64,000 nt of DNA from Trichosphaerium sp. ATCC 40318 (taxonomy: Eukaryota > Protista > Tubulinea), in contig JALMLS010000065.1 of NCBI GenBank assembly GCA_038496445.1, positions 124,001 through 188,000 of the forward strand, in the 5' to 3' direction. Shown piece by piece: positions 2,603 through 53,524 of the stretch (positions are counted from its first letter, which is position 1; each line of letters starts with the position of its first letter). The notes below the pieces were generated by a model that did not search any database, was not told the DNA's origin, and saw nothing but the letters and a program-made list of their open reading frames with translations. The position numbers were made by a program, and so were the translations under genes.

Positions 2603-2720
2603 ATTGTGTCTGTCATTCAACGCTTACTTATATTTCTAGAGGGTGAGCTCTTAGCACTTTAGCAGATCTAGAAAGAATTGACAAGCCTGTCAATGGTGTA
2701 GATCTACCACAATGTGAACT
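2603..2720 (+). mobile_element. Degenerate relic of the left end (TIR plus subterminal region) of the 21275-26556 transposon family
   Basis: ATTGTGTCTGTCATTCAACGCTTACTTATATTTCTAGAGGGTGAGCTCTTAGCACTTTAGCAGATCTAG aligns by eye with 21274-21345. Confidence 0.7.
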
Positions 2721-4258
2721 ATTTGCTTGACAATACTTTCCTTCATAGTGTGGCTTACGTAACTTAAGTAATAACAAAATTCAATGTCAGCTCACCATCT
2801 ATCCATTATTGGCAATATTACCTAGGTATGCACTGTGCGTTCAAGCCACAGAAGTCATTTGGTAGCTAAAAGAAATGGTACGATGGCTAAAAGCAACCTA
2901 TTGGTATGATTAGACTCAAACACTGTTCGACGTTGTTTCACGTGATAAAAAACCAACTGTATTGTACAGGTACGTGTAAAAGTTACTAACACTACAACTA
3001 GCCTGCCTACGCAATCAATAGCGCTCTCACGGCATCAACAGGGTTATAGCGTTAAAAAATCATAACTATTCAAACCAGTAAAACGACACTACCGTATACT
3101 TTGTAAACGCCACCAGGTATCAAATATGTAAATAAATAATTTTGGTTTCGGTTTGAAAAATCACGTGTTTTGATACGTCTTATTTATAACTTTTTCGCTT
3201 GAAGCCTGCTCCCAGTTCGTCTGATTAAACTTGAATGAGACATACAATAACTCAGTTTACTTTTTCCTTGCAAGTTGTTTATGAATACATTAAACTCAGG
3301 GTGGCTACATCACGGTCTGTGGGTTACCTAGATTATTCGTTTACAAGCATGTTGGGTATAATAGTCGTAGTAACTCCGTTTTATTAATAAAGGTAGATTA
3401 TCACAGTACTGTACGTCTCAGTTTAGGAAATAACTGTTGTTTGTTTTTTAAAAGCTTTAATCCTGCACAGAACCTCAAGTAGTTTGCGTACAATACATAA
3501 CATCATAGCTATTACATCAGTGTTAGAACGTGCTAAGAACTAGTATAGCTTACGTACGTGTAGTGCTAGTAGCATCTGTAACCATAGCATCCGTGGCTTG
3601 GACGGGAGATTGTAGGACGAGGAGGATGGGTTGGGCGTGGAGGAGGGCGTGTAGGTCTACATATTGATGGTCTACAACCGCCTCCAGAAGAAATGCTAGG
3701 CCGTACGTTAGCGTGGTAACAAGGGCGATCAACTCCGTAGTAAGGCATGTTGCGTTGTGTTGGTGACAAGTTGTAGTTTGATGTCTAGTGTGAAAGTTGT
3801 TAAGTGACGTTTTCATATTTCTTGAAGTTCAAAGTGCATATTACGACATTTGTCTGCATATATCATGTACAAACCTAGCACAGGTGTTGGCTTGAGGAAA
3901 CAAAAAAATATCACGTGTTTCGCCCTTTGGTGAAATATGACAGGTTGAATTATTTTGGTAGTTTACACTAAACGCACTATTCGAAACGCACTACTCGAAA
4001 CATACTAGAAGTTTAAGAAGTGGTAAGGAAGTGTACTAATACTCAATCCTTGAACAAACTTATATTGGAACGAACATGTTTGTCTATATTCTCTACGCGT
4101 GTGCTCACTGTACGACACTTTAACAGTAAAAATAGGCGGACATAGTGGTGCACTGTAAACTACCATTAGTAGTCAGTGAAGGTGGGAATACAAACAAGTA
4201 GCTTAACAGTGCTAAAATACATTCATTTCTCATCATCCTATCAAACAACAACTCTCAT
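2631..4258 (+). repeat. Segmental duplication, direct copy of ~50481-52201
   Basis: Collinear with small indels across the peptide 3' flank, peptide gene and bidirectional promoter; similarity ends at CAACTCTCATAA, just before the partner ATG. Confidence 0.9.
3566..3748 (-). CDS. 60-aa Cys/Pro/Arg/Tyr-rich peptide, copy 1
   Basis: MPYYGVDRPCYHANVRPSISSGGGCRPSICRPTRPPPRPTHPPRPTISRPSHGCYGYRCY; same length and frame as the paralogs at 27861 and 51582; intronless. Confidence 0.8.
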   Translation of the reverse strand: MPYYGVDRPCYHANVRPSISSGGGCRPSICRPTRPPPRPTHPPRPTISRPSHGCYGYRCY

Positions 4259-4368
4259 AATTCGAAATATGTGCCGTAACTTAATCAAATAACCTAAACA
4301 AACATAGGTAAAAACCCAAAAATATTCGCGGTTTGCGCCTGTATTTAAGCACTGCTTAAGTCAAATAA

Positions 4369-19038: not shown

Positions 19039-19828
19039 TACCAAAAATAATGTAAAATAGTAAAAAATGATAACAATAAAAAAAAAACATATTCAAATAC
19101 CAACAACTTTTTTTCACATGTCCTGTGCTAAAAGAACTTCTTATGAAGAATGTCGTATATATTAGCCTACAGGGAGCCCTTTTTTGCGCCAAGCCAGATA
19201 GCTCTAAGCATGGTAAAGACTTATAACCGTGGTAGTTCTATTGTTTTGGAAATTTCACAGTTCAACAACATTCAAGGCACACGGGATTTTGTTTCTCAAT
19301 GTGGCGTGTTCCAAACAATACTGGCTTTGTTCCCTAAAATAAGAAGCGCATGATCATTTGTTATGGATGTGTACTAAACTATGGAGGATGTTCACAATGA
19401 ACATGCTCTTTTATTAAAGGGTTTTAGCTTAAAATGACATTAACTTACCCATATCAGTTTTAAACCATTATAGCGCCTTGTGTGAAGGCTTATACAGCTC
19501 CACTGTTATCGCAAGTTACACAAGTCCCTTCAATAGCAATTGTATGAACACCAACCAAGTATCTAACACCTGAATCTGTAATTTTTGTACTAGTGGAGAA
19601 ATTGTTGCAAAGCCTAGCGTTGAAAACAAGTGATTCTTTTGTCAAAGTGTTGGAAATCATGAAAAATACGATTTAAGGAAAATGTAAAGGAAGTTTTCTC
19701 ACCATTGTATAACACTGAAACAAAGCCTATACTGAAAACAGCAATATTAAAGAAAGGGAAGCTTGCCTGTGGCTTTTATTGATTAAGCGATGTACAACAT
19801 TGCACACACTTTTAGTGGTAAATGTTCT

Positions 19829-21028
19829 TTAATATATAATGTGAGCACCAGTTAAGGCCTTTATACCTTTATCAGTAACACCAGTTCCATCAAGAAAAAT
19901 TGCATGAACACCAACCAAGTATTTAACACCTGCATCTGTAACATTTGTGTAACAAAGATTAATCGTATGCACTCCAGCCAATGTTTTCATACCCTCATCT
20001 GTAACTTTTGTATTGCAAAGATTAATTGTATGAACACCAGATAATGCTTTAATACCTTTGTCTGTTACTTGTGTGCCTTTAAGTTTAATTGTATGGACAC
20101 CAGCTAGCGCTTCAATACCGCCATCTGTAACTTTTGTAGAGTTAAGATATATTGTATGAACTCCAGCTAAGTACTTAACACCTGAATCTGTCACTTTTGT
20201 GCCACTAAGATCAATCATATGCACTCCAACTAATTCTTTAACACCTTCATCTGTTACTTTTGTAGAATTAAGATGTATTGTATGAACTCCAGCCAATGCC
20301 TTGATACCATCATCAGTAACTTGTTTACAGCGCCTTAAACTAATTTTATGGATGCCAGCTAATGCTTTAACCCCTTCATCGCTCACACCTGTATTCGTGA
20401 GATTGATTGTATGAACACCAGCTAAAGCCTGAATACCATCATTAGACACTTTTTCACAATTGCGTAGATTAATTTCATGAATGCCAGCCAATGCTTTAAT
20501 CCCTTCATCACTCACACCTGTGTGTGAAAGATTGATTGTATGAACACCAGCTAATGCCTTGATGCCTTCATCTGTCACAAAAAATGCACGAGATAATTGT
20601 ATTTTTTTGATTCCAGAAAGTTGTTTGAGGTGACCATCAGTGATGAACGTACACTTGCTACTAAAGTTAATACTGTGAATACCTTTTAACTTTGTAAAAT
20701 CAACATTTGCTTTCTTGATGCCCTCATCAAGTCTGAGGGAGTGCACTCCTTGAAGGTACTGTAATTGTTTCTGTTTGATAGGGAACTTGATGATTATCGT
20801 GTTTGTTTTAATGAGATGAGGCACTGTTTTGAATAGTTTTTTCAGCGAATGTTTTGATCTGATGACAATCTCTCTTGTATTTCTGTATCCCACGTGTTGT
20901 GTTGCGACCATTTTTAACGATTTTGAAGTGCGGACTACCGAATTCATAGTTACCTTAGATACAAAGTGTAGAATGTAAACAATGACTTCAACGGGAATCT
21001 CATCAAAGAATGCGCTATTTGAGTTCAT
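19829..21028 (-). CDS. F-box/leucine-rich repeat protein (intronless)
   Basis: N-terminal F-box (FDEIPVEVIVYILHFV); about 12 repeats of VHTINL..T.VTD.G.KAL.G; a relic of the same repeat lies at ~19430-19590. Confidence 0.88.
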   Translation of the reverse strand: MNSNSAFFDEIPVEVIVYILHFVSKVTMNSVVRTSKSLKMVATQHVGYRNTREIVIRSKHSLKKLFKTVPHLIKTNTIIIKFPIKQKQLQYLQGVHSLRLDEGIKKANVDFTKLKGIHSINFSSKCTFITDGHLKQLSGIKKIQLSRAFFVTDEGIKALAGVHTINLSHTGVSDEGIKALAGIHEINLRNCEKVSNDGIQALAGVHTINLTNTGVSDEGVKALAGIHKISLRRCKQVTDDGIKALAGVHTIHLNSTKVTDEGVKELVGVHMIDLSGTKVTDSGVKYLAGVHTIYLNSTKVTDGGIEALAGVHTIKLKGTQVTDKGIKALSGVHTINLCNTKVTDEGMKTLAGVHTINLCYTNVTDAGVKYLVGVHAIFLDGTGVTDKGIKALTGAHIIY

Positions 21029-21072: not shown

Positions 21073-21274
21073 GGGGTTGTATGGTTGTGTTTTAGAGTGC
21101 CAAGTAAACGTAAAGAGGCGTCGTCTATTTATTCTAAGCCGTATGACTTACCCTGACTTAATACACGTTCCAGCTATATATCATCTAGACGTAATCAACA
21201 AAAAACGTGAAGTGTCTTACTAGCTGCTGCGGTTTTATTTCTTGAAAATAAAACTACACTTGAAAGCGAACATA

Positions 21275-21296
21275 TTGTCTGTCTCATTCAAGTTTT
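21275..21296 (+). repeat. Left TIR
   Basis: TTGTCTGTCTCATTCAAGTTTT. Confidence 0.92.
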
Positions 21297-21437
21297 ACTA
21301 ATATTTTCTAGAAAGTGAGTTTCTAGCACTTTCAACAGATCTAGCAAGAAATGACAGATCCGTCGGATCTACAAAACTACCAAATGTGAATGTAGTTTTT
21401 CTCGCATACTCACAAAAAGAAAAAACACAAAAAAAAT

Positions 21438-22613
21438 TTACTCCTTTATTTGGCGACAATGTCTGTACATGTGGCTCAGACTATCACGAGTCATCATGGC
21501 CAACGTCATACCAATTTCAGCTTCCAAGGGCGCATTTCCGCGATGATATCGAAGTCTGTTTTTTATAGCAGCAAATACGAACTCACAGGGATTTAACTCA
21601 GGAGAGTACTTTGGAGTGAGCATCAAAGAAATATTATTAGCTTCACAAGCCATTGTTACTGCACCCAAAGATGCTTTGGATACGTGAATAGGTGCATTGT
21701 CACAAATAAAAACATCTCCTGGAACGAGTGAACCACTTCTCAGGCAATGGAGAACAAAAGCCCCCCACTCAGAGGAACAGTTTTTCCCATACGACATCAT
21801 TGAAGTGATTGGAGCCTGTAAAAAAGAATAAATGTAGTTGAAAAAAAAGTCATTAAAAAAAACAAATGTCGTACCTGGTCTGGAGCTATAGATGTTAAAA
21901 TCGTGAGTGTAGCAGTGCTTTCAAACGGTTGATGTTCAATAACAATCACCTTTTTACCCACAGGACCTCGCCCATATTTGCGGTACAATGCTTAAAAAAA
22001 AGGTAACAAAAAAGAAGCAGCAAAAAAGTTGGTCTACCTTTCGAAACAAAGTGTGATTCATCAGCATACTTCAAACGAGCAGGATCCAAATTCATGATTA
22101 TCTTAGCATAACGTTGATAATATAAGAAGTTATCAACTGTGTATTTGCGCACTTGTTTGTGTTCAACAACCAAAACAAATGTTAAACAAACACAAAAAAC
22201 GGAGAAACATTGTACCTTCCATGTCCAATTTATTGCCAAAAATCTCCTACTAATAAAACTGCGAGAAACAGTTTGAGGAGAAATCACTCGGTTTATAAAA
22301 GTTACGTATTCTTGGAGCAACGCACGTGGGTTTCTGGTATGTATCTCAATAATCATTTTCCAAATCATTTCTTCTTCCGCTAGCAAAGTTTGTTAACAAA
22401 AAACTGAATAGCTTGCTTACCATCTGTAAACTTGATGTTACGTCTTCCTCCGTAAGTGTTTGAATGGTATGTAGGATCTTTGTATTTTCGCAAGTGGTAT
22501 GATGCGCGAGCAGTTGATGTTTTGAACGCTTGTGCTGCAAATTGTACACCATGAATAAAAGCACACTCACCCAAAAGAGCATTTGTTTCTTGTGATGTTG
22601 TTCTAGTGGACAT
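21438..22613 (-). CDS. IS630/Tc1-like DDE transposase (DD38E), spliced
   Basis: LKYADESHF, ICDNAPIH, PKYSPELNPCE; N-terminal HTH-like region with GGRR; three canonical introns plus a 45-nt intron-like segment ending in TG. Confidence 0.92.
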
Positions 22614-22652
22614 TTTAAAAAATAAAAAAAAACCCAAAAGTAACAAAATACA

Positions 22653-25600
22653 ATGAACGGACCCACCAGAGATGACACTCCAGAGTACTGGGATCCACCT
22701 CAATTTCCTAATCCGCCCAAAGGGCAAATATGCAGATGTTGCCATAATCCAAAATCAGCCTATCAAATACGTGGTAGGCACAGGTGCCCTGTAGATCCCA
22801 TTACAGGTCTACCTAAATTATGTAATGACTTTAGAAAGTGTCGGCAAGGGCGTCGTATGTACTTTAATGCAATCCAAGTTACTGACTTTTTCTTAGACAT
22901 CCACATAAACACTCCTTCACCAAGGAGGATCCAAGAAGTCGAGGCTATGCACCGCCGACGACAAATACAAGTGCAATCTCCGAGTCACCAACCTCAAGTG
23001 TCAAGTAAGGAAAAACAACAAAAGCCACAAATGTCAAAGCCTTGGTTAGAATCAAAAGAAGCTCAAACAGTTGTACGTACTTTTGTTTGGTTTTTTGCCA
23101 TAAAAAGTAATTAATGCGAGTAGATGAAAGAGCTTGTGAGCCAATTGGCTTTACACATAACTCCACAGACATTGAACCTATTACAAAAAGCTCGCGCTAA
23201 CAGTGTGACACATTCGTCTGGCATTGTGAATCCAAACAAATGGAACACAATGATAGAGCAGCTTCGAAAATTAGCAAGCGGAAACGATAAATCAACATCT
23301 GGTAAGCATACGTACCTTTTTATTGCTCAATATTCTAAGGTTGCTATAGGTGACAAAAGAGCTGCCGAAAAATGTATTGCATTAGCTGACCTGCTTACAA
23401 AAAAAGTGCAAGGTACCTGTGGCTATTTACATCAACGCTAACTGCAAAGATAAACTAGGAAAGCCAGATCATCAATCCAATATAAATGCGCGTGCGTTTA
23501 AAAGTTAGTGAACTGAAATGTTCTAGGACATACAAGACGTATTAAATGATTATGACGTACCGGTACAATAATTTTCATTGTTTATGAACTAACAGTTTTG
23601 TAGATGAAGGATAGCACTCACGAATGGCAGAAGACATGGGAAAAGGTACAATACATGTTTCATAAGAACAATAAGTTGACTATGCACCTAGCACCACACA
23701 AACGCTTCTACCAGGGAAATTCTCACTGTACGTTACAGAAAGCGCTTCTTGTATGCTAATGGTACAGCCAACTGAAGAAAACGTGAGGGATACCACAAAA
23801 AACATGGCTCTGGTGCGCAGTTTAAACGGTTTTTTTTCTATGTGTACTATGTCTATATTTAGAAGGTGCACAACTCACAAGCTAGCGAACCAAAAGGGCT
23901 TTGTAGGATCTATCCTTCTGCCACTGACAACGTTAGTTTGAAACAAAAAGTAGCACAACTAATTTTTTGTAGTTGCCTGTACCGCAAAAGAAGGGAGCCA
24001 GAAGCCAAAAACAGGTACAAAAATGATGTTAGCTTTTGCTCATTTAACTAGCGCACATTGTCAACAAAGCGCAAGTTTGCTAAACTACAACGCAAGAATG
24101 GCAGAAAGGTACATGCAAGCATCACGTGTTTTTTACAGACGTGAAACTAAAAACCCAACTTTAGAAAGCAAAATCACAACAAAAAAGACGCAACCGTAGC
24201 ACGCAACACACGGTACACAGGCTTTTATTTTGTTACAGGCGTTCATGACAGCATAGGTGTTGGATGATTATGGCTTTTCAGAAGGCGAGGTACTGAAACA
24301 CTTTGTATAACACTGTTTTGTTCCTAAGTATGTTCCAAAGGATGTTATACCGCCACCAAAGAAGCGCAAGGCCAAACACACGCAAAAGAAATTACCCCCA
24401 AAGGTACAGTGTGGAAACTCAATTTTTCGTGTTCTTTACTTCAGAACACGTATTTTTCTGAGACCACGTGCTTTTTGGTAAACATTTGTACAGGTAAATT
24501 CTAAACGCTCATTAAACCCATATTTGAGCCCAGATTTCATGGTATGTTAGGGTTGTGGTTCGGTTACTAACTGCTTTTTTAGTCTTTTGGTAACAATGAC
24601 AAAACAGATGTGTTAGATCTCACGGCTTTTGAAAATGACAGTGATGATTTGCTTGATAGTGTACGCACAAAGTTGTCAGTTTCAAAACTTAAAGATTCTT
24701 TAGTTCTCGTCTTATGACATGGAAGTACGTTTTGCGTATTAGTTGTACATTAAGGTGTATAGATTGATGATCTTGAGTTTGCGTTGTACACACAGTCGGA
24801 TGAAGAGATTTACCCACGGAAACGCTCTAAGCGCCCAGTACACACAGTATGTTTTTGTTTGCTGAATCTTTGCTAGCCTCCGTTTTCTGCTGAAGCATAT
24901 GATGAAGATGAAGCTCTACAAAACGCAATAAAAGCTTCATTGACAGAAGCTAAAATGGTTGACCCAACAAGTTTGGCGATTGCACAGGCAGATGTACTTT
25001 TTTACCTAGTTAAATGCTGCTAAGTAAATTGATAGGCTGGTGCTGATGTGTTTTTGGCTCAAGACCGCTTCTTTATTGCTGTAAGTGCGCTTTCTTAATC
25101 ATCTCATGACTTTTTTTAGTTTAACAGTGAATTATTGACTAAAAAAGAGCGAGAAGTGGTTGCTGAAAATGTAATTTTGAAACTTGCACATTACTGTCCA
25201 ATGGCTATAGTGAAATGGGTACAAACTCTTCTCACGTCACATGGTAATTTGCATTTTAGGTAAACAGTGAATCTGCTTCTTCTTTGATGACCCAAGGTAT
25301 GCGAAACCTCATTGATATTGTTGGAGTACGTTGTGGTTTAATTGGAGAAGCTAAATTTACTTACTTTGGTTTAGGTAAATAGTGGTGCAGCTGCGCCAAA
25401 AACTTCACAGTCTCAAGCTTCTGCAACTCAGGCCCCTACAGCTCTTACGTTCGCTCCTGCAACTCAGGCTCCTACAGCTCCTACTTTCGCTCCTGTAACT
25501 CAGGCTCCTACAACTCCTACTTTCGCTCCTGCAACTCAGGCTTCGGCTCTGGCCCTACCTTTGTTACCATCTCATGCTCCTGCAACTCAGGCCCCTACAG

Positions 25601-26354
25601 CTCCTACTTTCGCTCCTGCAACTCAGGCTCCTACAACTCCTACTTTCGCTCCTGCAACTCAGGCTCCTACAGCTCCTACTTTCGCTCCTGAAACTCAGGC
25701 TTCAGCTTTGGCCCTACCCTTGTTACCATCTCATGCTCCTGCAACTCAGGCCCCTACAGCTCCTACTTTCGCTCCTGCAACTCAGGCTCCTACAACTCCT
25801 ACTTTCGCTCCTGCAACTCATCTGGCCCTACCCTCGTTACCATCTCGCGCTCCTGCAACTCAGGCGTCAGCTCTGGCCCTACTCTCATTGTCATCTGATG
25901 CTCCTGCAACTCAGGCCCCTACAGCTCATACTTTCGCTCCTGAAACTCAGGCCCCTTCTTCAGCTCCTGAGTTGTCTCCATCTTCACCATCTCCTCAAGC
26001 TCCAATTGCATCGCCTGTACCAACTTCTTGTAAGTTTATCCTTACATTAATTATTTGTTAGAGTTCTCTTAACGTTGAAGAGTTACGCAAGCGCAGATTG
26101 CAGAGATTTTCACAAAGAAATTCGGTAATAACATGTTTTGGAGTTGTGTTCTTATTGACTTAATTTAGAATGGTTTTCCAATGGCTCGTGTTTTAGAGCC
26201 ATTGAAACCAGAGGTGCTCTGCTTCTGTGGGCGAGTTGCGCGCTATGTGCCTGGTAGTAAAGGAAGACGTGGTGGCACATATTCATGTGCGGATGGTGTA
26301 CCCACTTGTGCCTTTTTTCAACTCGAAAAGAATGCAATGTACTGCAAGCAATAA
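22653..26354 (+). CDS. Transposon cargo protein (~830 aa): Cys/His cluster, NLS-like motifs, acidic region, UIM, Ala/Pro/Thr repeats, VBM-like motif, C-terminal GRF-type zinc finger
   Basis: About 26 exons joined by hand in one open frame; DEDEALQNAIKASLTE, EELRKRRLQRF, LCFCGRVARYVPGSKGRRGGTYSCADGVPTCAFFQ. Confidence 0.8.
25420..25960 (+). repeat. Coding minisatellite (33-bp unit, APATQAPTxPTF-type) with higher-order repeats
   Basis: GCTCCTGCAACTCAGGCTCCTACAGCTCCTACTTTC-type units repeated more than 10 times. Confidence 0.92.
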
Positions 26355-26534
26355 ATAGTTAGGTTTTTTTTTTTGTGTCAGTTTTTTTTTACAAGGAGAG
26401 GTTTTTAGTCGCTTTTTTTGCAAGTTCTTAGCTTTTGAATCACATTTTGCTAGTTTTAGCAGAATTGTCAGATCTGTCAGATCTGTCAGATCGGGCAGAA
26501 ACTGGAGTTTTTTTGCTAAAACTCAGTCTGGCTG

Positions 26535-26556
26535 AAAACTTGAATGAAACAGACAA
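26535..26556 (-). repeat. Right TIR
   Basis: AAAACTTGAATGAAACAGACAA, the reverse complement of the left TIR with one mismatch. Confidence 0.92.
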
Positions 26557-26667
26557 TAACAGTTTGACAAAGAAACGTGATAAAAATAAAGAGAGAAATT
26601 GTTTTATTTTTGACACAGAGACCAAGATCAGTCTTGTACAACTGTAATTGGAGATTCATTTCAGTAT

Positions 26668-27232
26668 TTATTTGGCAGTGACATCAGCTTCCTTTGAAGC
26701 ACCACCCCATTTGGAGTAGTCGACTTCAAATTTTGGAGCCAATTGAAAGATACCATGGAAGTTTTGCTTTGGCATATCCTTGTCGAGTTTTGGGAATGCG
26801 AACTTGAATCCTCTGCTCTTAGTTCTAAAAAAAATAATGGTGAGTTGACGTTGGTGAGGCGAAGAAAATTGAAAACGTCGGATTCGATGCTGATTTTGGA
26901 GAAAGACAAAAGACATGAACGACCACTTTTATTCATTGATCAAAAAAAAACAGGTCGAAAGTTGTTTGTGCTTTGAGTACGTACTTTCCAGCAGGGATAT
27001 GACCAAAATCGAGTGTAACTTTATCGAGATCACCAGAACCACCGCATGTCATGACCTCAGAGTGGAAAGGAGAGTCTTCATCAACATCGACATAAGCCAA
27101 GCAGTCGGTGATTGGAATTGGAAGCTTGTTGGTAAACTTGACTTTACAACAGTATGTGGTCTTGTCATCGAGGTTTGCTGGTACGTCGTACTCAACTTTA
27201 ACACAGCCGTCTTCAACACAGATAGAAGTCAT
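26668..27232 (-). CDS. 134-aa protein without signal peptide, predicted Ig-like beta-sandwich, copy A
   Basis: Two exons (GGAAA|GTACGT...TTTAG|A); VKFTNKLPIPITDC and DFGHIPAGKTKSRGFKFAFP recall transglutaminase-C/CARDB-type Ig domains (fold inferred). Confidence 0.85.
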
Positions 27233-27860
27233 TGTTTTTAAGAGTTGTTGTTTGTTGTTTGTTTGGATGATGAGAAATGAATGTATTTTAGCACGGTGTT
27301 AAGCTACGTGCTTGTGTATTACCGCCTTCACTGACTACTGACAATAATGGTAGTTCCGGATAAAGTTCACTATGACAGAATATTTTTGCCTTTACAGTGT
27401 CAAAACCAGCGAGCGCACGCGTAGAGAATATAGACAAACCCATGTTCGTCCATTCTTAGTTCGTTCAAGGATAAACAAAATGGCTGTTTATATTCGCTTC
27501 CAATCACTTTCTCCACTCCTCTAGCCTGTTTTTGGTACGTAGTCGCTTGGTGACGTTAGGAAACTACCAAAAAAAGTCTAGTTGTCATAAATCACCAAGA
27601 GCCAAACTATCAGAAACACCACTTTGTTTTCATTGTATTAGTCTTAAAAAGAATTAAGAACACGTGACGTTATAACTTTTTTATTTCCACAAAACCAAAA
27701 CACTCCAATAGCTAAGGTTGTCAAACAAGCACATGAAATACATCTGAACACAAAATTATTAGTTTAATGGTTCAAATAATACTTGCGGAAAGGTGGAACG
27801 CCACTTAAAAACTTTGACTCGAAATCTTACTACAACTCTTCACAAACAACCTAAAACAAC

Positions 27861-28043
27861 ATGTCTTACTACGGATGTCATCGCCCTTGTTACAACCCTT
27901 GCCCACGCCCAAGCATTACTTGTGGAGGCGGTTGTAGACCATCAATATGTAGACCTTCATGCCCACCTCCGCGCCCATGCCACCCTCCTCGTCCTACAAT
28001 TTGCCGTCCAAACCACGGATGCTATGGTTACAGATGCTACTAG
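27861..28043 (+). CDS. 60-aa Cys/Pro/Arg/Tyr-rich peptide, copy 2 (11 Cys)
   Basis: MSYYGCHRPCYNPCPRPSITCGGGCRPSICRPSCPPPRPCHPPRPTICRPNHGCYGYRCY; A-rich leader and downstream AATAAA. Confidence 0.85.
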   Translation: MSYYGCHRPCYNPCPRPSITCGGGCRPSICRPSCPPPRPCHPPRPTICRPNHGCYGYRCY

Positions 28044-28401
28044 CACTACACGTACATAAAATAAACCAGCTCTGGGCACGTTCTAACACTGATGTTATAG
28101 TGCGAGGGATAAAACGACTTGAGTTTCTAATGCAAAGATAAAATGTAAAAAACAGTCATTTCCTTTCTCAATAAAAAAGAAGTTCCTACTTGCGTTAGTT
28201 CCATGTCCTCGTATACAACTGGTTTGTAGTCAAGTGGTCTTGACTGCTTTTTGGCGTAGCAGTAAGCTAGACTTATAGGTTTTCTATTGCTTGAAAAATG
28301 CGAGACCGAGTTGCCGTGTACTCTGATCAGTGAGCAATATCCCTTTATGTCATATTTACACTTGTACTATTTCAATCAAAACAGAGAACCTTTAATGTTC
28401 T

Positions 28402-30192: not shown

Positions 30193-30320
30193 TACCAGTT
30201 TTGTGGAGTTGTTGGTGTGAAGCGTAAATAATTGTCTTTACTGTACAGCTTAATAAAAGGTAGAATAAAACAAGAATAGTTAACATAATAAAGTTATGGG
30301 TTTATTACTTTGTGCATTAT

Positions 30321-32389
30321 TTACGGTTGCCACTGTCTGAAGAAACTTATGGTACTGATATCTGAAGGTGTCAAACGCTTTGCCACGTTTATGAAATCAT
30401 CGCCTAAGGGAGGAGACATGTTAACATTAAGAAGATCGAAAAGAAAATTCAAACTCACTCGCAGTACAAATCTCACAAAATTCCGCAACAACAATAGCTG
30501 CCACCACTGGAACAGAATTAGAACCATGATAGTGGTACAAAGGTGATCCGCTGTGTCCTCCGCTTATATCACAATTTGTTCTAACAAGCTAGAAGAATTT
30601 AAGTAAGCTGTATACATTCAAGTTGTTAAGTCTTGGTTGAATTGAGATCTTAACTTACCCTGTTCCACCCATTTACTCTGAAGCTGTAATTGTTTAGTTG
30701 GCAACTTTTTGTATCTCCATATAAAGCACCATCAACACACGACGGTGATGGGGCATTGAGTTTATCACAAGCAGGATATCCTCTGTTGTAATGGTACAAA
30801 CCAGCTAAAGATAGAGCAGGTTTGGCGACATACCCTTAGCACAATAGTCAGCAACAAAAGAAACATTGTAGAAAAATGTACCCATCCATCCTGTAGCTCT
30901 CCAATCCTATCTGGTAAGACGAGTATACCCCAGTCGAAATTTGGAGAATATTCAGTTACGAGTGGATTTCTACTAAATGTCAATATTAAGGCGTATCAAT
31001 GTTGTTACATACCTCCATTCTACAGGTGTAAAATACCATCTGAATGGATCACCAGGTTCAGCGTTTAAAGTGATCGTAGATTGTCCATAAGGTTCGTTTA
31101 TTCTTGAATTCTCGTTTCTACCAGGAATGACAGTAACAGTAAACCAGTTGTTTGTTCCTTGAGCATTAATGCAGTGTGCTATTCACAAAGTTAAATCGAC
31201 AGGTTTTAATATGAGTGTTGTTTAAAGGATACCTGCTGTGAGAACGTGTCTTGGTCCAATCAGAGTACCAGTGCATCTTCCAAAGTCAGATATTGTTCTA
31301 AAACCAATGTGAGTTCGAAAAGTACATCAAAATAAAACGTGTTTGTACCTCCAAGGCCATTGTGTTGTTGGTTCTCTAAGAATTCTGGAATCGTCTGCAT
31401 TGCTCCATCCTCGTTTTGTTGGTGCATTATTTTCATACGAAGGTATGGTATGTATTTTCTTTTTATGTTAGCCACGATCTAAAAGTAAGGTTATGTACCT
31501 CAACGCCAGTCAATCCATCTCTCATACGATTAATTTTTTCAAACAAGTTTGATCCAACTTCAATCTCCCACTCAACCTTTGTTCCTAAATTACATTGTTA
31601 TACTAAGAGATGGCATATCAAAATAAAAATTGATACGTACCAGAGTTAAAAGCAATCAACTTTGTTCTACGTGGTAAGTCTGTCTCGTCTATAGCACATG
31701 ATTAGAGTAACTGAGAATACCATCGATATCATACCTGTTTCTGTACTACCGTCTGTTGTTCTGGTTTCAAAAGGTATTTTAGGCATTTCTGTACGCTCAT
31801 CAACAAGCTTCCCTGTGCCAATAGGAGTAGCCTAAGAAAAACTAGGTAACCGAACACTCAAAAAGTAAAAGGAGCATACCATCAAGTCGTCTGTTATTCT
31901 GATTGGTTTGTTATCTTTTGGCACAATGTTATCAAGAATACTCGATAGTTTCCCAAGACCCAAGGTATCGCAGCTACACTCACAGTCGCATATACTCCGA
32001 ATAGGATACGGTACTGTAGGGACATTGTTTGCATCAAAACAAACTTCCTTGCCATCAATTTTTGTATCTCCAATTGCGATTTGATGCAAATACAAACGGC
32101 GTATACTACAAGTACCAAGGGTACCGACAATGATATTAGTGCATGAAGTGGCAAGAGGTGAGTCACAAACACTTTGACATTTTGATACAGCCATCTCTCT
32201 TACATTTTGTAATGCTTCTGCCTACGAAACAAGTAAACCAACCAATGAATCAAAACAAGGAGAAGCCATAGCTCTATTACTTACCAAAGTACATCCGTAA
32301 GTTTTTGCTGTTACACGATGGCCTTGCGAGTATGCACTTTGTGCATAAAGAGATAGTATCAAGAACGTTGCTAAGATTACCAAACGCAT
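30321..32389 (-). pseudogene. Secreted trypsin-like (V8/glutamyl-endopeptidase type) serine protease, copy 1, with a 1-nt frameshift
   Basis: CTGTLIGPRHVLTAAHC, FDWGIL, CDISGGHSGSP; GAGCTACAGGA versus GAGCTTACAGGA in the paralog breaks the frame near 30894. Confidence 0.7.
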
Positions 32390-33787
32390 CAAGAGAGGTT
32401 GCTTTACTTGCTGCGCTATTGTCGTTTGGGATGTGAAATTCATGTGAAAACCAGCGTCACGTGCTTTCGCTAAGCTATCAGGGTCCTTTCATGCGTATTC
32501 ACTGTATGTGTGCAAATGTCTTCAACCCGAGGAATATTTTCCAGCATCTGGCGCGTGATAAAGGCTTACAAACCATGCACTAAGGCGGTGTTACCAATCG
32601 CCTCAAATTATTCACTTAAATTTTGTCTTGCCAGGAAAAGTATGATATGAATCATTCACTTCCGCTTTTTTTGATGTTTATGGTTTCCTTGGATGCGCAC
32701 TTAATTGAGGGAAAAGGCGGAAACCTTGTCCTTTGCATCGATACATACCAGTACTTCCGTCTGTAAATTATTTAAATATTCACTTAAACATTGCCTTTGT
32801 CATGTGAATTTGTTCAAGAAAACCGATATCAAGCTGCTTGACGTATGAAATCTGTTTAGTAAAGTAAAGCTACGCCAAACTAGTTAGTTTTGCTAGCGCT
32901 AGTTTTGTACTTTTTGTCTTTGTAGTAAGTGTCTTTACAAGAAAGTGCTGTAGAAATTGCAGACTTAGATACCTTTCCACATGCCTACAAATGAACCTAC
33001 ACAAATAATTTGCACTATTTTCTGTTAACACGTGGTGCACAACAACAAAGTGTTTGATAGGTTTTCCAAGACAGTCACACAATCATGTATCCTTCGTAAT
33101 ACTCGTGAAGTGATAAAAAATAAGCAGGCTTACATCTGAGGAAAAAAGGTATAACGCATTGGGTTTCTCAGCTCGTTGGCAGGGCTTGACTTGCTGCTCA
33201 GGGAAAACAACTTGACTTTTCAGGTTGGCGCAGGCTGCCAAAAGTATACAATGCTGTTGAATAGACACGTTTTAGAATCGCTTGCTTCTCGGTAAAACAG
33301 CACTTAGTGGCGTTGAGTTAAACTGAAACAGTTTCAGGAAACAATAAGGTTTATGCCAAATCTTCGTACGACATTACCTACAGCTTACATAGAACTCATA
33401 TCAACTGTGACACATGTATTACTCATATCAATATTGTGAACTCCTACAAGAGTACCTTGTGTTGTATGAACACTACAGCATTGATCAATCAGTTCCAAAG
33501 CCATCATGGAAGCAGGTGTTGTTTAAGACATGGACCTATTTGACACTTAGTTTATTTCGGACAAGAGGCATAACTGTAGCTCCGTTAAGCAATATTTGAA
33601 CAACAATGCGCTTGTTTTACAGTTTCACTTTTCGATGTAATTATGTATAAAGTGGGGCCTGCCTTACGGCACTCGCCTCTGGTTTGTAAAAAAAAACTTA
33701 TTTTACAGTCCTACGCTTTTTGTTTCCAGTTCCTTTTGAAATCACGTGACTATTTCAAAATAAAAATACAGCAGTGCTCATCGCCAC

Positions 33788-34988: not shown

Positions 34989-35279
34989 ATACAGAGCTTG
35001 ATCGTTTAGAATAATTAAAAATGAATCATTTTGATCTATCTTGGTTACTTACAAAGATTTGATTGAATTTCTAAATCTGTTAGGAAAAGTATAGTTCCAT
35101 TGAATATAAGGTTAACTTGCACCTTTGTATTGGGTGGAGCATTCAGCTAGTCAATACAAACGCAATATTAGCAAGAAGTAGACGGTTGTACTGGTGTAAA
35201 ACGAAAATGACTAGGCATATTGCCGTTTTTAAACCAATTAAGATGTATGCTGTGTTTATTTTTAGTATTTTTAAATTAT

Positions 35280-37352
35280 TTACGGTTGCCATTCTCTGAA
35301 GAAACTTATGACACTGATATCTGAAGGTGTCAAGCGTTTGGCTGTGTTCACAAAATTATCGCCTAAGGGGAGACGTTAACAGTTAAAGAGGTACTAAAGA
35401 AAACGGAATGAACTCACCTGCACTACACCTTGAACAATGTTGCCACACGGCAATAGCTGTCACTACTGGAACGGAATCTGGGCCATGATAATGATACAAA
35501 GCAGATCCACTATGTCCACCATTCATGTCACAATTTGTTCTTACAATCTAGTAAATATAAGTACACACAGCATTTGAAAGTTGAGCTGCTAACTTACCCT
35601 GTTCCATCCATTTGCTATGGAGCTATATTGACTAAGTTCACACTCTTTGATATCTCCATACAAAGCGCCATCAACACATGTTGGCGATGGTGAATTGGCT
35701 GCACCACATACAGGATATCCTCTGTTGTAATGATACAAACTTCCCAAAGATGAAGCAGGTTTGGCGACATACCCTTAGCACAAATAGTTAGCAACAAAAT
35801 AAACATGTAGAAAGATGTACCCATCCATCCTGTAAGCTCTCCAATTCTATCTGGTAAGATAAGTATACCCCAGTCGTATGGTGAAGCAGCGTATCCGGAA
35901 ATAGCTGGATCTCTAACATAAATGTCAATAATTACCAAGAACGGTTTCAATATTGCATACCTCCATTCTACAGGTGTAAAATACCATCTAAATGGGTCAC
36001 CAGGTCCAATGTTTGCTGTGATTGTTGATTGCCCATATGGACGTGTGTTTGAATTGGAGTTTTCATTTCTACCGGGAATGACAGTAACAGTAAACCAGTT
36101 GTTTGTTCCTTGAGCAGTGATACAGTGTGCTATTCACAAAGTTAAATCGAGAGGTTTTAATATGAGTGCTGTTTAAAAGAATACCTGCTGTGAGAACGTG
36201 TCTTGGTCCAATGAGAGTACCAGTACAACTTCCAAAGTCGGATATTGTTCTAAACCAATGTGAGTTCAAAAAGTACGTCAAAATAAAACTTGTTGTACCT
36301 CCAAGGCCATTGTGTTGTTGGTTCTCTAAGAACTCTGGAATCATCTGCATTGCTCCATCCTCGTTTTGTTGGTGCATCATTTTCATACGAAGGTACTGCA
36401 CGCGATTTCTATACTATGTTAGCGATACACCAAATATAAAGACTAAAGTAGTATTACATACAATAGCGCCAGTCAATCCATTTCTCATACGATTTATTTT
36501 TTCAAACAAGTTCGATCCAACTTCAATCTCCCACTCAACCTTTGTCCCTAAATTATGTTGTTAGGCTTAAAAGGGTATTGAATCAATAATAGATACTTGT
36601 ACGTACCAGAGTTAAAAGCAAGCATTCTTGTTTTACGTTGTAAGTCTGTCTTGTCTACAAAGGGGTTTGTTAGAAGACGTAAATAGCAAACAATATAAGC
36701 CAATACCTGTTTCTGTTCTACCATCTGTCGCTGTACTATCAAAAGCATCGGTCTCGCCTGTTGGCATTTCAATACGTTTATCAACTAGTTTCCCCATGCC
36801 AACAGGAGTAGCCTAAGAAAAATTAGGTAACCGAACACTCAAAAGTAAAAGGAGCATACAATCAAGTCGTCTGTAATTCTGATTGGTTCGTTATCTTTTG
36901 GCACAATGTTATCAAGAATACTAGATAGTTTCCCAAGACCCAAGGTATCGCAGCTACACTCGCAATCGCATATAGTTCGAACAGGATACGGTACTGTAGG
37001 GACATTGTTTGCATCAAAACAAACTTCCTTGCCATCAATTTTTGTATCTCCAATTGCGATTTGATGCAAATACAAACGGCGTATACTACAAGTGCCAAGG
37101 GTACCGACAATGATATTCGTGCATGAAGTGGCAAGAGATGAGTCACAAACACTTTGACATTTCGATACAGCCATCTCTCTTACATTTTGTAATGCTCCTT
37201 CCTACGAAACAATTAAAGGGAAGATTTAAACAATCTCTATTATTTACCAATATGCATCCGTAAGTTTTCGCTGTTACACGATGGCCTTGCGAGTATGCAC
37301 TTTGTGAATAGAGAGATAGTATTAAGAACGTTGCTAATATTACCAAACGCAT
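35280..37352 (-). CDS. Secreted trypsin-like (V8-type) serine protease with Cys-rich N-terminal domain, copy 2
   Basis: Signal peptide MRLVILATFLILSLYSQSAYS; triad motifs LTAAHC, YDWGIL, CDMNGGHSGSA. Confidence 0.85.
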
Positions 37353-38324
37353 CAAGAAACGTGTTGTTTTGCTTGTTTTGCTTTTGAAAAATATTTTGGT
37401 GGCGTCAGATGGATTTTCACGTGAAAAAAGTTGCGTCATGTGCGTTCACTGTATGTGTTTATTGGACTTCAAATTGGGATTTGCTTGATGGGCTTCTTGA
37501 TGATGTGGCTTCACGTTGTCAGGGCGCCAACTTTTTGCCAATTGCGGCTTCTGGTTTGTGCGCCACTTCCTTTTCTGTTAAATCTCGTATTTCTTGCGGG
37601 GAACTTCTGTTTGGGTTTTTTCGGAGGCTATTGATTCTTATGGGCTACAAGTAAACGCATGACAAAAAACATGGGTCTTACGTTTCGATCAAAAACCAAT
37701 ACTTGCGCCATATAAATTAAATATATATATGTATATTATTATTATAATAATATTCACTTAAATTCTGCTTTATCTTGTGAATTAATTCAATTAAAACCTA
37801 CCTGACCATGCTCGCTCGCATGTAAGATCCCTCCAAGTGGCACCCAACTTCGAAGCGCATTAAAACACAGTTATTTACACTAGTTTTATTCTAACCTGTA
37901 TTTATGGGTCTTGGCATGCCGTTTCGGAGGTGAAGCGTTATTCTATTGTTAACTTGGCCTTTCGTTGTTTAAAGAGACAATTGCTCTTCTTTTTCCACGT
38001 CATTATACTTCTACAGGCTTTCATCTACGGTCAAGGTTAATCTGCTTGTCTTCACAACAGTCGAAGAGATTTGACATTTCATCTTTCTAGTACGTACCTC
38101 CGTCATACAGCTAAGTGTCCAGACCACTGCCTACGTAAAACCTTCGGCAACGGGCACTGCACAACTAAAATACTCAAGTTCAAATTAATGGTATATTTCA
38201 GCAAGTGTTTTGTTCTCAACATTTATTAATTTTACTTGTCTTTACATGAACTACCAATGGTTGTCATTACTCCGAAAGAACAGAATCTACCAGGAGGCCC
38301 ACAAGGGAGTCGAACCCATTGTCT

Positions 38325-50480: not shown

Positions 50481-50565
50481 CAGAAAGTGAGTTCTTAGCA
50501 CTCTAGTAGATCTAGTAAGAATTGACAATTCTGTCAAAAGGTGTAGATCTACCACAATGTGAATT
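50481..50565 (+). mobile_element. Second, truncated relic of the transposon left subterminal region
   Basis: AGAAAGTGAGTTCTTAGCACTCTAGTAGATCTAGTAAGAATTGACA matches 21310-21356. Confidence 0.7.
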
Positions 50566-51399
50566 ATTTGCTTTACAATACTGTCCTTCATAGTATGGCT
50601 TACTTAACTTAAATCATAGCAAAATTTTCAATGTCAGCTCACCGTCTATCCATTTTCTTCGCTGGAAAGATCGCAATATTACCTAGGCACTGTACGTGGT
50701 ACGTTCAAGCCACAGAAGTCATTTGGTAGCTAAAAGAAAACGTACGATGGCTAACAGCTAAATATTGGTATGATTAGACTCAAACACTGTGTTCGACGTT
50801 GTTTTACGTGATGAAAAACCAACTGTATTGTACAAGTAAGTGTAAAGTTTACTAGCACTACAACTAGCGCCTGCCTACGCTGTCAATAGCGCTATCCCGG
50901 CATCAATAGGGTTATAGCGTTGAAAAAATCATACACAACAATTCAAACCAGTAAAACGACGCTACCATATGGTTTGTAAACGCCGCCAGGTATCAAATAT
51001 GTAAATAAACAATTTTGGTTTGAGTTTGAAAAATCACGTGTTTTTGAGACGGATTCATAACTTTTTCGCTTGACGCCTGCTCCCAGCAGGCTGATTAAAT
51101 TTTGAATGAGACTCTACAATAACTCAGTATACCTTTTTACCATTACTGGTTGTTTAGGGTGGCTACATCACGTCTGTGTTACCTAGATTATTCGTGTACA
51201 AGCAAGGTGGGTACAATGGTATTAGGAACTTTGTTTTATTGATAAAGGCAGGTTTTTACAGTTTAGAAATTTCTGTTGTTGGTTTTTTAAAAGATTTAAT
51301 CTTGCACAGAACCTCAAGTAGTTTGCGTACAATACCATAACATCATAACTAGTAAATCAGCGTTAGAATATGCTAAGAACTAGTATAGCTTACGTAGTG

Positions 51400-51582
51400 C
51401 TAGTAGCATCTGTAACCATAGCATCCGTGGTTTGGACGGCAGATTGTAGGACGAGGAGGATGGGTTGGGCGTGGAGGTGGGCATGAAGGTCTACATATTG
51501 ATGGTCTACAACCGCCTCCGCAAGCAATGCTAGGGCGTGGGGTAGGGCGGTAAGTAGGGCGATGAACTCCGTAGTAAGGCAT
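51400..51582 (-). CDS. 60-aa Cys/Pro/Arg/Tyr-rich peptide, copy 3 (7 Cys)
   Basis: MPYYGVHRPTYRPTPRPSIACGGGCRPSICRPSCPPPRPTHPPRPTICRPNHGCYGYRCY. Confidence 0.85.
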   Translation of the reverse strand: MPYYGVHRPTYRPTPRPSIACGGGCRPSICRPSCPPPRPTHPPRPTICRPNHGCYGYRCY

Positions 51583-52207
51583 GTTGCTGTGTGTTGGTGA
51601 AAAGTTGTAGTTTGATGCCTAGTGAAAGTTGCTAAGTGACGTTTTCATCTTTCTAGAAGTTCAATGTGAATAATTATCCAAATACTATGATGTTTGTCTG
51701 CGTATATCATGTACAACCCTAACTCAGGTGTTGGCTTGAGGAATAAAAAAATATCACGCCACGTGGTTCAAAATGTTGATGTATTTCGAGGTCCGTTATT
51801 GTTTGAAAGAAGTTATTCTACTTGTAACATGAAAATAGAATGATATTTGAGATATTTGTACTTGGTGAAATATGACAGGTAGACTTATTTTGGTAGTTTG
51901 ACTAAACAGCACTATTCTAAACATACTAGAAGTTTAAGAAGTGGTAGGAAGCGAACCAATAATCAATCCTTGAACAAACTTATAATGGACGAACATGGGG
52001 TTTGTCTATATTCCCTACGCATGTGCTCACTGTACTGACACTGTAACAGCAAAAATAAGTGGGCATAGTGGTGAACATTAAAACTACCATTAGTATGTCA
52101 GTAGTCAGTGGAGGCGGGAATACACAAACACATAGCTTAACACCGGCTAAAATACAGTCATTTCTCATCATCCAAACAAACAACAAACAACAACTCTCAT
52201 AAAAACA

Positions 52208-52746
52208 ATGACTTCTATCTGTGTTGAAGACGGCTGTGTTAAAGTTGAGTACGACGTACCAGCAAACCTCGATGACAAGACCACATACTGTTGTAAAGTC
52301 AAGTTTACCAACAAGCTTCCAATTCCAATCACCGACTGCTTGGCTTATGTCGATGTTGATGAAGACTCTCCTTTCCACTCTGAGGTCATGACGTGCGGTG
52401 GTTCTGGTGATCTCGATAAAGTTACACTCGATTTTGGTCATATCCCTGCTGGAAAGTACGTACTCAAAGCACAAACAACTTTCGACCTGTTTTTTTTTGA
52501 TCAATGAATAAAAGTGGTCGTTCATGTCTTTTGTCTTTCTCCAAAATTCTTCGCCTCACCAACGTCAACTCACCATTATTTTTTTTTAGAACTAAGAGCA
52601 GAGGATTCAAGTTCGCATTCCCAAAACTTGACAAGGACATGCCAAAGCAAAACTTCCATGGTATCTTCCAATTGGCTCCAAAATTTGAAGTCGACTACTC
52701 CAAATGGGGTGGTGCTTCAAAGGAAGCCGATGTCACTGCCAAATAA
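52208..52746 (+). CDS. 134-aa predicted Ig-like protein, copy B
   Basis: Exons 52208-52455 and 52590-52746 (405 nt); protein identical to copy A. Confidence 0.88.
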
Positions 52747-53524
52747 ATACTGAAATGAATATCCAATTACAGTTGTACAAGACTGATCATGGTCTCTGTG
52801 TCAAAAATAAAAACAATTTAAATAACTCTTTTTTTTCTTATCACGTTTTTTTATCAGTCTTCTCAAAAGTAATCGTGTTCAAACCATACTATGAAACCAA
52901 CCTAATCTGTCAAAACCAAGAACGAACTTGATTTCAGCACGATAGCAAAATTCCAGCCACATGCTTTACTGACAGTCCAGATTGCACAATACCTCAATTT
53001 CTTTACCTAAACACGTGGCATCCTCACGTCAATGTTTCTTGCCCATCTCTCAGGCTTTTCACCCTATTGTCATTGAAAGAGTACCTTTGCTTCGAACATA
53101 CCAAAGCAACTACGCGGCCGATGAGCGTTAGCAAGTCTTCGCCGGCTGGAGGAACTCGGTTATTTTTTCTGAGCAGAATAGACGTTTCCTTTGGCACTAA
53201 CACTCTAAACAACGTCGATTGCACGCTGCCAGCCGGACCAAGTTATGTTCAAAGTTACCCGAAGCTACATTGATCTGTAAAAGGTTGTTTTAACTCATTG
53301 ATAGTTGCAGCTAATGCACCTACAGCCTTTTCTTGACTTAAACTCCTAGCACTTACGACATTTGTTCATGAGTTACAACTGAATTATATACGACAACTTG
53401 CTTGTAGGTTACGTAATTCGAATAAGACTAAGGTTTACTAAAGTACAAAAAAAAGTAAATTGTGTTTTTTGTGATTTTGTTGAATTGTTGTTTCAAAAAA
53501 CGTGCAAGGTCTATTTTGGCTTTC

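Follow-up and report, generated by a model that had tools for sequence, protein, structure and literature searches.

Does a DNA transposon carry its own means of recruiting the host segregase Cdc48/p97? The question is raised by a gene at positions 22653-26354 (plus strand) of the 64-kb stretch of eukaryotic DNA analyzed here (hereafter, the window), which an earlier note had read as the cargo of a transposon, its product combining ubiquitin- and p97-recruiting motifs with nucleic-acid-binding zinc fingers. We find that the gene lies within an autonomous IS630/Tc1/mariner-type DNA transposon of 5.3 kb, in which it forms an unusual accessory gene, the case for its function being made at the level of motifs, from a single copy. 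These motifs follow the grammar of a ubiquitin-dependent p97 adaptor, an interesting but unproven assignment, to which we give a probability of roughly 35%. Little is understood of how eukaryotic cut-and-paste transposases come off their very stable post-reaction complexes, or of how such elements deal with the ubiquitin and SUMO pathways of the host, and an adaptor gene of this kind would bear on both.

An autonomous Tc1/mariner-type transposon with a divergent second gene

The transposon occupies positions 21275-26556 (5,282 bp) and is bounded by terminal inverted repeats (TIRs) of 22 nt with 1 mismatch, with TA on both sides. The left TIR end recurs at 2605 and 3249, the termini of a 645-bp element resembling a miniature inverted-repeat transposable element (MITE), which has the same 22-nt inverted ends and shares approximately 80 nt of left subterminal sequence with the larger transposon; its left flank is CA, not TA. 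The 645-bp element represents a non-autonomous offshoot of this family, of which a degraded copy also lies near 50482. The termini shared with 2605-3249 and with the copy near 50482 thus indicate that the ends belong to a mobile family. Beyond the right TIR, approximately 9 nt are similar to the sequence flanking the short relative as well (3250-3258), and the right boundary is therefore precise only to approximately 10 bp. Motifs of the TGACAGATC type lie inside both ends, with 3 tandem copies at the right one, and the left TGACAGATC/AGATCT motif is possibly a transposase binding site.

Once 3 or 4 short introns are removed, the transposase model is an open frame between its ATG (22613) and its TAA (21438), yielding a product of 330 amino acids (342 if an in-frame 36-nt intron is kept) with the triad D159-x84-D244-x33-E278. 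Its last exon matched Pfam DDE_3 (E 1e-10), the NCBIfam IS630 model (E 1e-12, under the model cutoff) and the catalytic domain of Sleeping Beauty (5cr4, E 0.0034). The transposase is intact and of the IS630/Tc1-type DDE class. On the minus strand at 22216-22151, its reading frame contains a hydrophobic stretch of 16 residues, VQCFSVFCVCLTFVLV, which starts with GTAC like an intron, lacks an in-phase AG acceptor and may represent either an insertion or an intron of a non-canonical type. The ATGs of the transposase and cargo genes are divergent and only 39 bp apart, separated by an A-rich spacer (22614-22652), so that each promoter would have to overlap the other gene or be shared. Together, the 2 genes fill the element to within approximately 160-200 bp of each end, with the cargo gene ending approximately 200 bp from the right end. 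The TIRs, the TA duplication, the intact DDE transposase and the non-autonomous relative bear out the claim that the gene is the cargo of a DNA transposon.

The element shares with Tc1/mariner transposons, such as Sleeping Beauty, a DDE_3 transposase with a D,D,E triad, short TIRs, the TA duplication and short non-autonomous derivatives. However, it is 5.3 kb long, compared to 1.2-1.3 kb for mariner (PMC7325037), has introns in the transposase gene and, with its divergent second gene of 3.7 kb, does not conform to the short, single open reading frame (ORF) plan of that group. Multi-ORF members of the superfamily, TBE and Tec, have been described only in ciliates (PMC7325037). These resemble the present element in having a DD34E-type transposase together with extra ORFs, including a zinc-finger ORF in TBE and an ORF on the complementary strand in Tec, but they have 3 ORFs and TIRs that are either approximately 80 bp long and telomere-tipped or approximately 700 bp long, whereas the TIRs found here are 22 nt long and free of telomeric repeats, and the element uses the standard genetic code and spliceosomal introns. 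The element thus does not show the combination of ciliate host, long TIRs and 3 ORFs that marks TBE and Tec.

Motifs of the cargo product and the exons that encode them

All of the motifs previously noted, namely, the Cys/His cluster, KRKFAK, PPKKRKAK, PRKRSKRP, the UIM-like segment (UIM, ubiquitin-interacting motif), EELRKRRLQRF and the C-terminal finger, are present at their places on the plus strand. They are distributed over 3 reading frames, so that a single protein containing them needs splicing. To assess how readily such motifs arise, the six-frame translation of the 64-kb window was scanned with strict regular expressions for the VCP-binding motif (VBM), the UIM and the CxCG...CxFF finger, with expectations obtained from shuffled sequences. 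Each expression matched once, against 0-0.17 matches expected, and the motifs therefore exceed chance; the VBM string did not occur in any of 30 shuffles.

The UIM-like motif, DEDEALQNAIKASL, starts at 24901 and reads DEDE-A-L-QN-A-IKA-S-LT-E, with the acidic run followed by the hydrophobic-x-x-Ala-x-x-x-Ser-x-x-acidic pattern. The best match of its exon in the PDB is the UIM of the p97 cofactor ZFAND2B/AIRAPL (4xkh_E, E 0.14). The published VBM consensus is EhRRRRLxhh, and RHBDL4 inserts the RF pair of its VBM into the N domain of p97 (PMC5389986). The sequence found here, E-L-R-K-R-R-L-Q-R-F, agrees with this consensus except for 1 Arg replaced by Lys, and ends in RF as in RHBDL4. VBMs usually sit at protein termini, next to a UIM in RHBDL4 and together with UIMs in ataxin-3 (PMC5559722); in the cargo product, the VBM is located approximately 75 residues before the stop, with only the small finger after it. 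The UIM and VBM thus appear to be well formed, non-random and arranged in the order known from the p97 cofactors RHBDL4 and ataxin-3, which supports this part of the earlier claim. Like the tail of RHBDL4 and like ataxin-3, the product would have a UIM followed by an Arg-rich VBM helix near the C-terminus; unlike these host proteins, it is encoded by a transposon, has 1 UIM rather than 2 or 3, contains neither a rhomboid nor a Josephin domain, and shows no homology to them outside the motifs. ZFAND2B/AIRAPL, which consists of AN1 fingers, a VCP-interacting motif (VIM) and tandem UIMs, offers another parallel in its overall logic, with zinc modules combined with a ubiquitin reader and a short p97-docking helix. 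Its docking helix, however, is a VIM and not a VBM; the Cys cluster of the cargo product does not match its AN1 fingers, and it has a CAAX tail and lacks the terminal finger. Regular expressions for the SHP, VIM, PIP and UBZ4 motifs gave no match in any plausible exon. An acidic exon further upstream carries VLDLT followed by an acidic/Ser run, which we take to be SUMO-interaction-like (SIM-like).

The exons were modelled with codon log-odds and splice heuristics trained on the window, dynamic programming being used to find the best spliced path through 22653-26354 under 2 parameter sets (Table 1). In the 3' half (24763-26354), the same 8 exons were obtained in both runs, separated by 7 introns of 39, 42, 39, 41, 49, 45 and 44 nt, which is the size class of the transposase introns. 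The last of these, a phase-0 intron, joins the VBM exon to the last exon, and the finger, CFCG-x18-C-x6-C-AFFQ, ends 10 codons before the TAA. A separate codon-frame score backs the frames of the 3' half, of exon 1 and of the 105-codon helical ORF. It agrees with the 3 short exons at 25036-25325, which encode approximately 70 non-repetitive residues, and reaches +7 to +14 per 20 codons in the frame of the linker, where the other frames are negative. This linker comprises approximately 210 residues rich in Pro, Thr and Ala, and the periods of its repeats (36, 87 and 159 bp) are all multiples of three. The 3' half consistently follows a splicing path that links the nuclear localization signal (NLS), UIM, linker, VBM and finger in frame. 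Accordingly, the idea of one combined protein is supported for this half of the gene and does not extend to the middle (23413-24582), which does not splice consistently and is considered below.

Definable introns in the window measure 36-59 nt. In a reference set of 13 cargo and transposase introns, 1 of which was later dropped by the transposase model, 10 have GTAC or GTAA at the 5' end; a length of 36-59 nt and a YTRAY-like branch site are common to nearly all of them. These starts, the short size and the branch site could be characteristic of the source organism.

Table 1. Coordinates of the transposon and its 2 genes within the window.
Feature	Position	Strand	Details and basis
Left TA target-site duplication	21273-21274	no strand	Direct reading; same as TA at 26557-58
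Left TIR, TTGTCTGTCTCATTCAAGTTTT	21275-21296	+	Inverted pair of 24 nt including TA, 96% complementary; blastn E 3e-5
Left subterminal motif, TGACAGATC/AGATCT	21352-21370	+	Inverted match to 26470-26488; kept in the short relative at approximately 2660
Transposase gene	21438-22613	-	Exons 22613-22571, 22534-22421, 22379-22038, 21990-21875, 21815-21438
Cargo exon 1	22653-23072	+	153-codon ATG ORF (22653-23111); frame favored by codon-frame score; 3' end at 23004 or 23072
Helical segment	23124-23412	+	105-codon ORF in the frame of exon 1; best codon-frame score there; 5 predicted helices
Middle, with KRKFAK (24067) and PPKKRKAK (24353)	23413-24582	+	The 2 dynamic programming models differ; codon signal weak and frame-switching
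Acidic exon, with SUMO-interaction-like VLDLT (24610-24624), then acidic/Ser run	24583-24660	+	Regular expression; strongest codon-frame score of the region; no Pfam match
NLS-like exon, with PRKRSKRP (24814-24837)	24763-24837	+	Both dynamic programming runs; 39-nt intron next, with the best acceptor score of the gene
UIM exon, with UIM DEDEALQNAIKASLTE (24901-24948)	24877-24993	+	Pfam UIM E 0.057; PDB 4xkh_E E 0.14; unique regular-expression match
Three short exons (25036-25080, 25120-25218, 25260-25325)	25036-25325	+	Both dynamic programming runs; flanking introns of 42, 39, 41 and 49 nt
Pro/Thr/Ala linker exon, with 12-residue units APATQAPTAPTF	25375-26016	+	Tandem repeats of 36, 87 and 159 bp (Tandem Repeats Finder, repeat search)
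VBM exon, with EELRKRRLQRF (26077-26109)	26062-26124	+	Fit to the published consensus; unique in the window
Last exon, with Cys4 finger (26220-26321)	26169-26354	+	TAA at 26352-54 overlaps AATAAA at 26350-55
Right subterminal repeats, 3 x TGTCAGATC	26466-26492	+	Tandem Repeats Finder; inverted match to left subterminal motif
Right TIR	26535-26556	-	1 mismatch to left TIR; adjoined by TA at 26557-58

A putative p97 adaptor and the alternatives to it

Read as a single gene, the cargo would most likely encode a nuclear, largely disordered adaptor. The NLS-like basic run would ensure its nuclear entry, the acidic SIM-like stretch and the UIM would read SUMO- and ubiquitin-modified proteins, the Pro/Thr/Ala linker would provide a flexible tether, and the C-terminal VBM helix would dock in the N-domain cleft of Cdc48/p97, whereas the Cys-rich modules at both ends may anchor the protein to DNA or to the transposase. 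Such an adaptor would direct the host segregase to a protein that carries ubiquitin or SUMO and is held tightly at the element DNA; the most plausible candidate is the transposase, which would still occupy the DNA ends once cleavage or strand transfer has taken place. Removal of this target would allow host repair to complete the reaction, in parallel to the action of ClpX on MuA and of p97 on trapped PARP1. We infer that all motifs reside in one polypeptide, and the binding activities, the target and the benefit to the element are likewise inferred from them. That the target is specifically the transposase on the element DNA after the reaction is less probable than adaptor function as such, and the full proposal, in which the element encodes its own ubiquitin/SUMO-reading Cdc48/p97 adaptor so as to free its DNA of the transposase or of host chromatin proteins, appears unlikely on the present evidence.

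The parallels with Mu and PARP1 are functional analogies only: in each, the reaction can go to completion once an unfoldase has taken away a very stable complex of protein and DNA. In Mu, the unfoldase ClpX removes a very stable transposase-DNA complex; the Mu transposase itself bears the ClpX tag, and no adaptor gene is known in that system. Extraction of trapped PARP1 by p97 is described in PMC8760077. Should the full proposal hold, the cargo gene would represent the Mu-ClpX principle in a eukaryote, encoded by the element itself, and would be the first gene of any mobile element known to recruit p97. It would also form a new class of accessory gene in a superfamily generally regarded as single-gene. 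Transposase removal and the handling of the host ubiquitin and SUMO pathways would then be directly testable with one small element, one accessory gene and 2 motifs amenable to point mutation.

Several results weigh against this assignment. Only one full copy of the element was seen, and joining all of the motifs in one protein takes approximately 15 introns; the exons within 23413-24582 differ between the dynamic programming runs, with KRKFAK and PPKKRKAK being included in only one of them. The profile comparison proposed in the earlier note for the UIM and the zf-GRF family yielded a sub-threshold match for the former (Pfam PF02809, E 0.057, 13.7 bits, under the 21-bit cutoff, as is often the case for short motifs) and none for the latter; this UIM was also the only Pfam match among 24 stop-free pieces of the locus. 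A PDB sequence search with exon 1, the helical ORF and the UIM, VBM and finger exons returned nothing significant and, for the VBM exon, no match, and the RKRR of the VBM could be a simple NLS. In the literature searched, we found no mobile-element gene described as having p97-recruiting motifs, so that the adaptor reading is without precedent.

The Cys-rich modules fared less well than the UIM and VBM, and this part of the original description is not supported. Neither the finger exon nor the trimmed finger matched any Pfam family, zf-GRF (PF06839) included, or any PDB entry, solved GRF fingers included, even at E<=10. The finger resembles the GRF fingers of TOP3A, NEIL3 and APE2 in the CxCG...aromatic-x-C...C-x-F-F spacing of a small C-terminal Cys4 zinc ribbon, but it lacks the Gly-Arg-x-Phe core, reading Gly-Gly-Thr-Tyr instead (G-G-T-Y-S-C), and has Leu at the position of the closing Trp. 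A single-sequence AlphaFold2 model of the finger exon was too poor to use (predicted local distance difference test score, pLDDT, 42.7). Thus, the finger is at best GRF-like, and its binding to DNA a conjecture. The N-terminal cluster (22731-22841) reads C-x-C-C-H-x11-H-x-C-x11-C-x5-C and matched no family in Pfam or the PDB; a similarity to the trypanosomatid protein DMIP5 (E 0.44) was dismissed as chance, given the nature of that protein. Both the cluster and the finger exist, albeit not with the exact spacing first given, since the former has no trailing His and the last 2 Cys of the latter are 6 residues apart. No profile backs the label 'nucleic-acid-binding' for either.

Searches for relatives add to the points on this side. 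Large protein libraries were searched with exon 1 of the cargo gene, for which HMMER detected no true relative among 1.84 billion representative proteins and a word-index protein search found none either. The sole library match, P0001, was rejected as a tandem-repeat artefact of 618 residues with 10 matches to residues 65-98; this protein consists of approximately 10 copies of a 50-residue unit (...TDFFLD...) and resembles a translated satellite. Viral contigs scanned with exon 1 and the transposase exon gave only 29-residue IS630-like matches. Metagenomes contained nothing matching the helical ORF, the single-sequence AlphaFold2 model of which is helical and, at pLDDT 56, too poor for a fold search, and no genuine match to the TIR pattern, the one contig recovered having 46% GC and no further similarity, as expected of a chance match. 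Within the rest of the window, tblastx revealed no paralogues of the cargo gene or the transposase. The cargo gene is an orphan, without detectable relatives in the parts searched, and the role proposed for it is therefore a reading of short motifs only.

Three other explanations, which overlap in part, have to be set against a p97 adaptor serving the element. All or part of the cargo may be a captured host gene (transduplication) for a nuclear ubiquitin/p97 adaptor, in which case the motifs would reflect its host job and have no role for the transposon. A second gene of 3.7 kb is indeed exceptional, given that Tc1/mariner elements typically have a single ORF (PMC7325037), the short relative at 2605-3249 is mobile without the cargo gene, and the inconsistent middle might mark decay. 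However, the window contains no parental copy or paralogue, exon 1 has no host homologue in any library searched, the introns remain whole, although captured fragments tend to be incomplete, and the gene fits the element exactly, down to its divergent start next to the transposase ATG. We therefore regard capture as rather unlikely; if real, it would be one of the rare cases in which a Tc1/mariner element has captured a gene. The several Lys/Arg runs and the 2 Cys-rich modules would equally suit a plain DNA-binding or nuclear-import helper that does not involve p97, with the Cys-rich ends binding DNA or the transposase, the basic runs serving as NLSs and the UIM-like helix being incidental. 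Such helpers have models in the Myb-like ORF2 of PIF/Harbinger and the zinc-finger ORF of the ciliate TBE elements, the latter showing that multi-ORF relatives of Tc1/mariner with a zinc-finger ORF are known, and the sub-threshold score of the UIM and the 10-residue pattern on which the VBM is based fit this explanation as well. It is unlikely nonetheless, because E-h-R-K-R-R-L-x-R-F is far more specific than an NLS and absent from shuffles, and because the VBM comes after the UIM, as in known p97 cofactors.

The remaining explanation concerns the gene itself, which may be 2 genes or a decaying pseudogene, so that the motif combination would be an artefact of reading across. In its two-gene version, a Cys-cluster/helical protein would end near 23440-23506 and be followed by a separate SIM-NLS-UIM-VBM-finger protein. 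The middle of the gene lends itself to this explanation: strong short introns are few (23563-23603, 24015-24051 and 24494-24528), and from 23460 to 24300 there is only a weak codon signal, which jumps among overlapping open segments as it would after frameshifts. Moreover, the 2 dynamic programming models differ here, and to link the segments takes introns of 100-330 nt, several times the length of the 11-12 trusted ones in the 2 genes (36-59 nt). Against a second gene, no convincing ATG was seen upstream of 24583, and a stop-free spliced path from 22653 to 26354 exists, although such paths arise easily by chance. On balance, this explanation also appears improbable. The segment 23413-24582 may hold small undetected exons, frameshifts of a decaying copy or the border of 2 genes. 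The adaptor reading is the one we tentatively prefer.

Repeats and genes around the element

The window has a GC content of approximately 37%, with genes broken into short open segments, and ORFs near the element match the Reeler, protein kinase, RRM, LRR_6 and aminotransferase domains. We rejected a non-standard genetic code of the ciliate type as unlikely, since the frames between exons are broken by all 3 stop codons (TAA, TAG and TGA). Rfam and tRNA scans of the window gave no matches.

A second repeat family, at least 2.4 kb long, is present in 3 copies with 80-88% identity (2643-4260, 50487-52856 and, inverted, 26565-28101), the last of which comes to within approximately 9 bp of the transposon at its right end. 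The MITE-like insertion is common to the repeat copies at 2.6 kb and 50.5 kb and is therefore older than their duplication. Within this family lies an ORF of 60 codons at 27861-28043 that is extremely rich in Cys and Pro (CRPSICRPSCPPPRPC...), with counterparts at 3509-3762 and 51394-51596 and 83-90% DNA identity across the 3 copies.

Directly to the left of the transposon, on the minus strand at 19829-21028, lies a gene for an F-box-like protein with approximately 13 LRR_6 repeats of 21 residues (63-bp period in the DNA), and a fragment of the same leucine-rich repeat (LRR) is found at 19514-19588, 360 bp beyond the main LRR array. An exact look-up of this protein gave no record. The best eukaryotic relatives of this F-box/LRR ORF are MMETSP transcripts (53% identity) and the Clydonella transcriptome in EukProt, and the source of the window is accordingly taken to be a microbial eukaryote, rather than human or a virus of animals or crops. 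To the right of the transposon, the segments 30309-32399 and 35268-37362, spaced by approximately 4.95 kb, form a tandem segmental duplication with many blocks that are 74-96% identical, which probably holds 2 paralogous genes.

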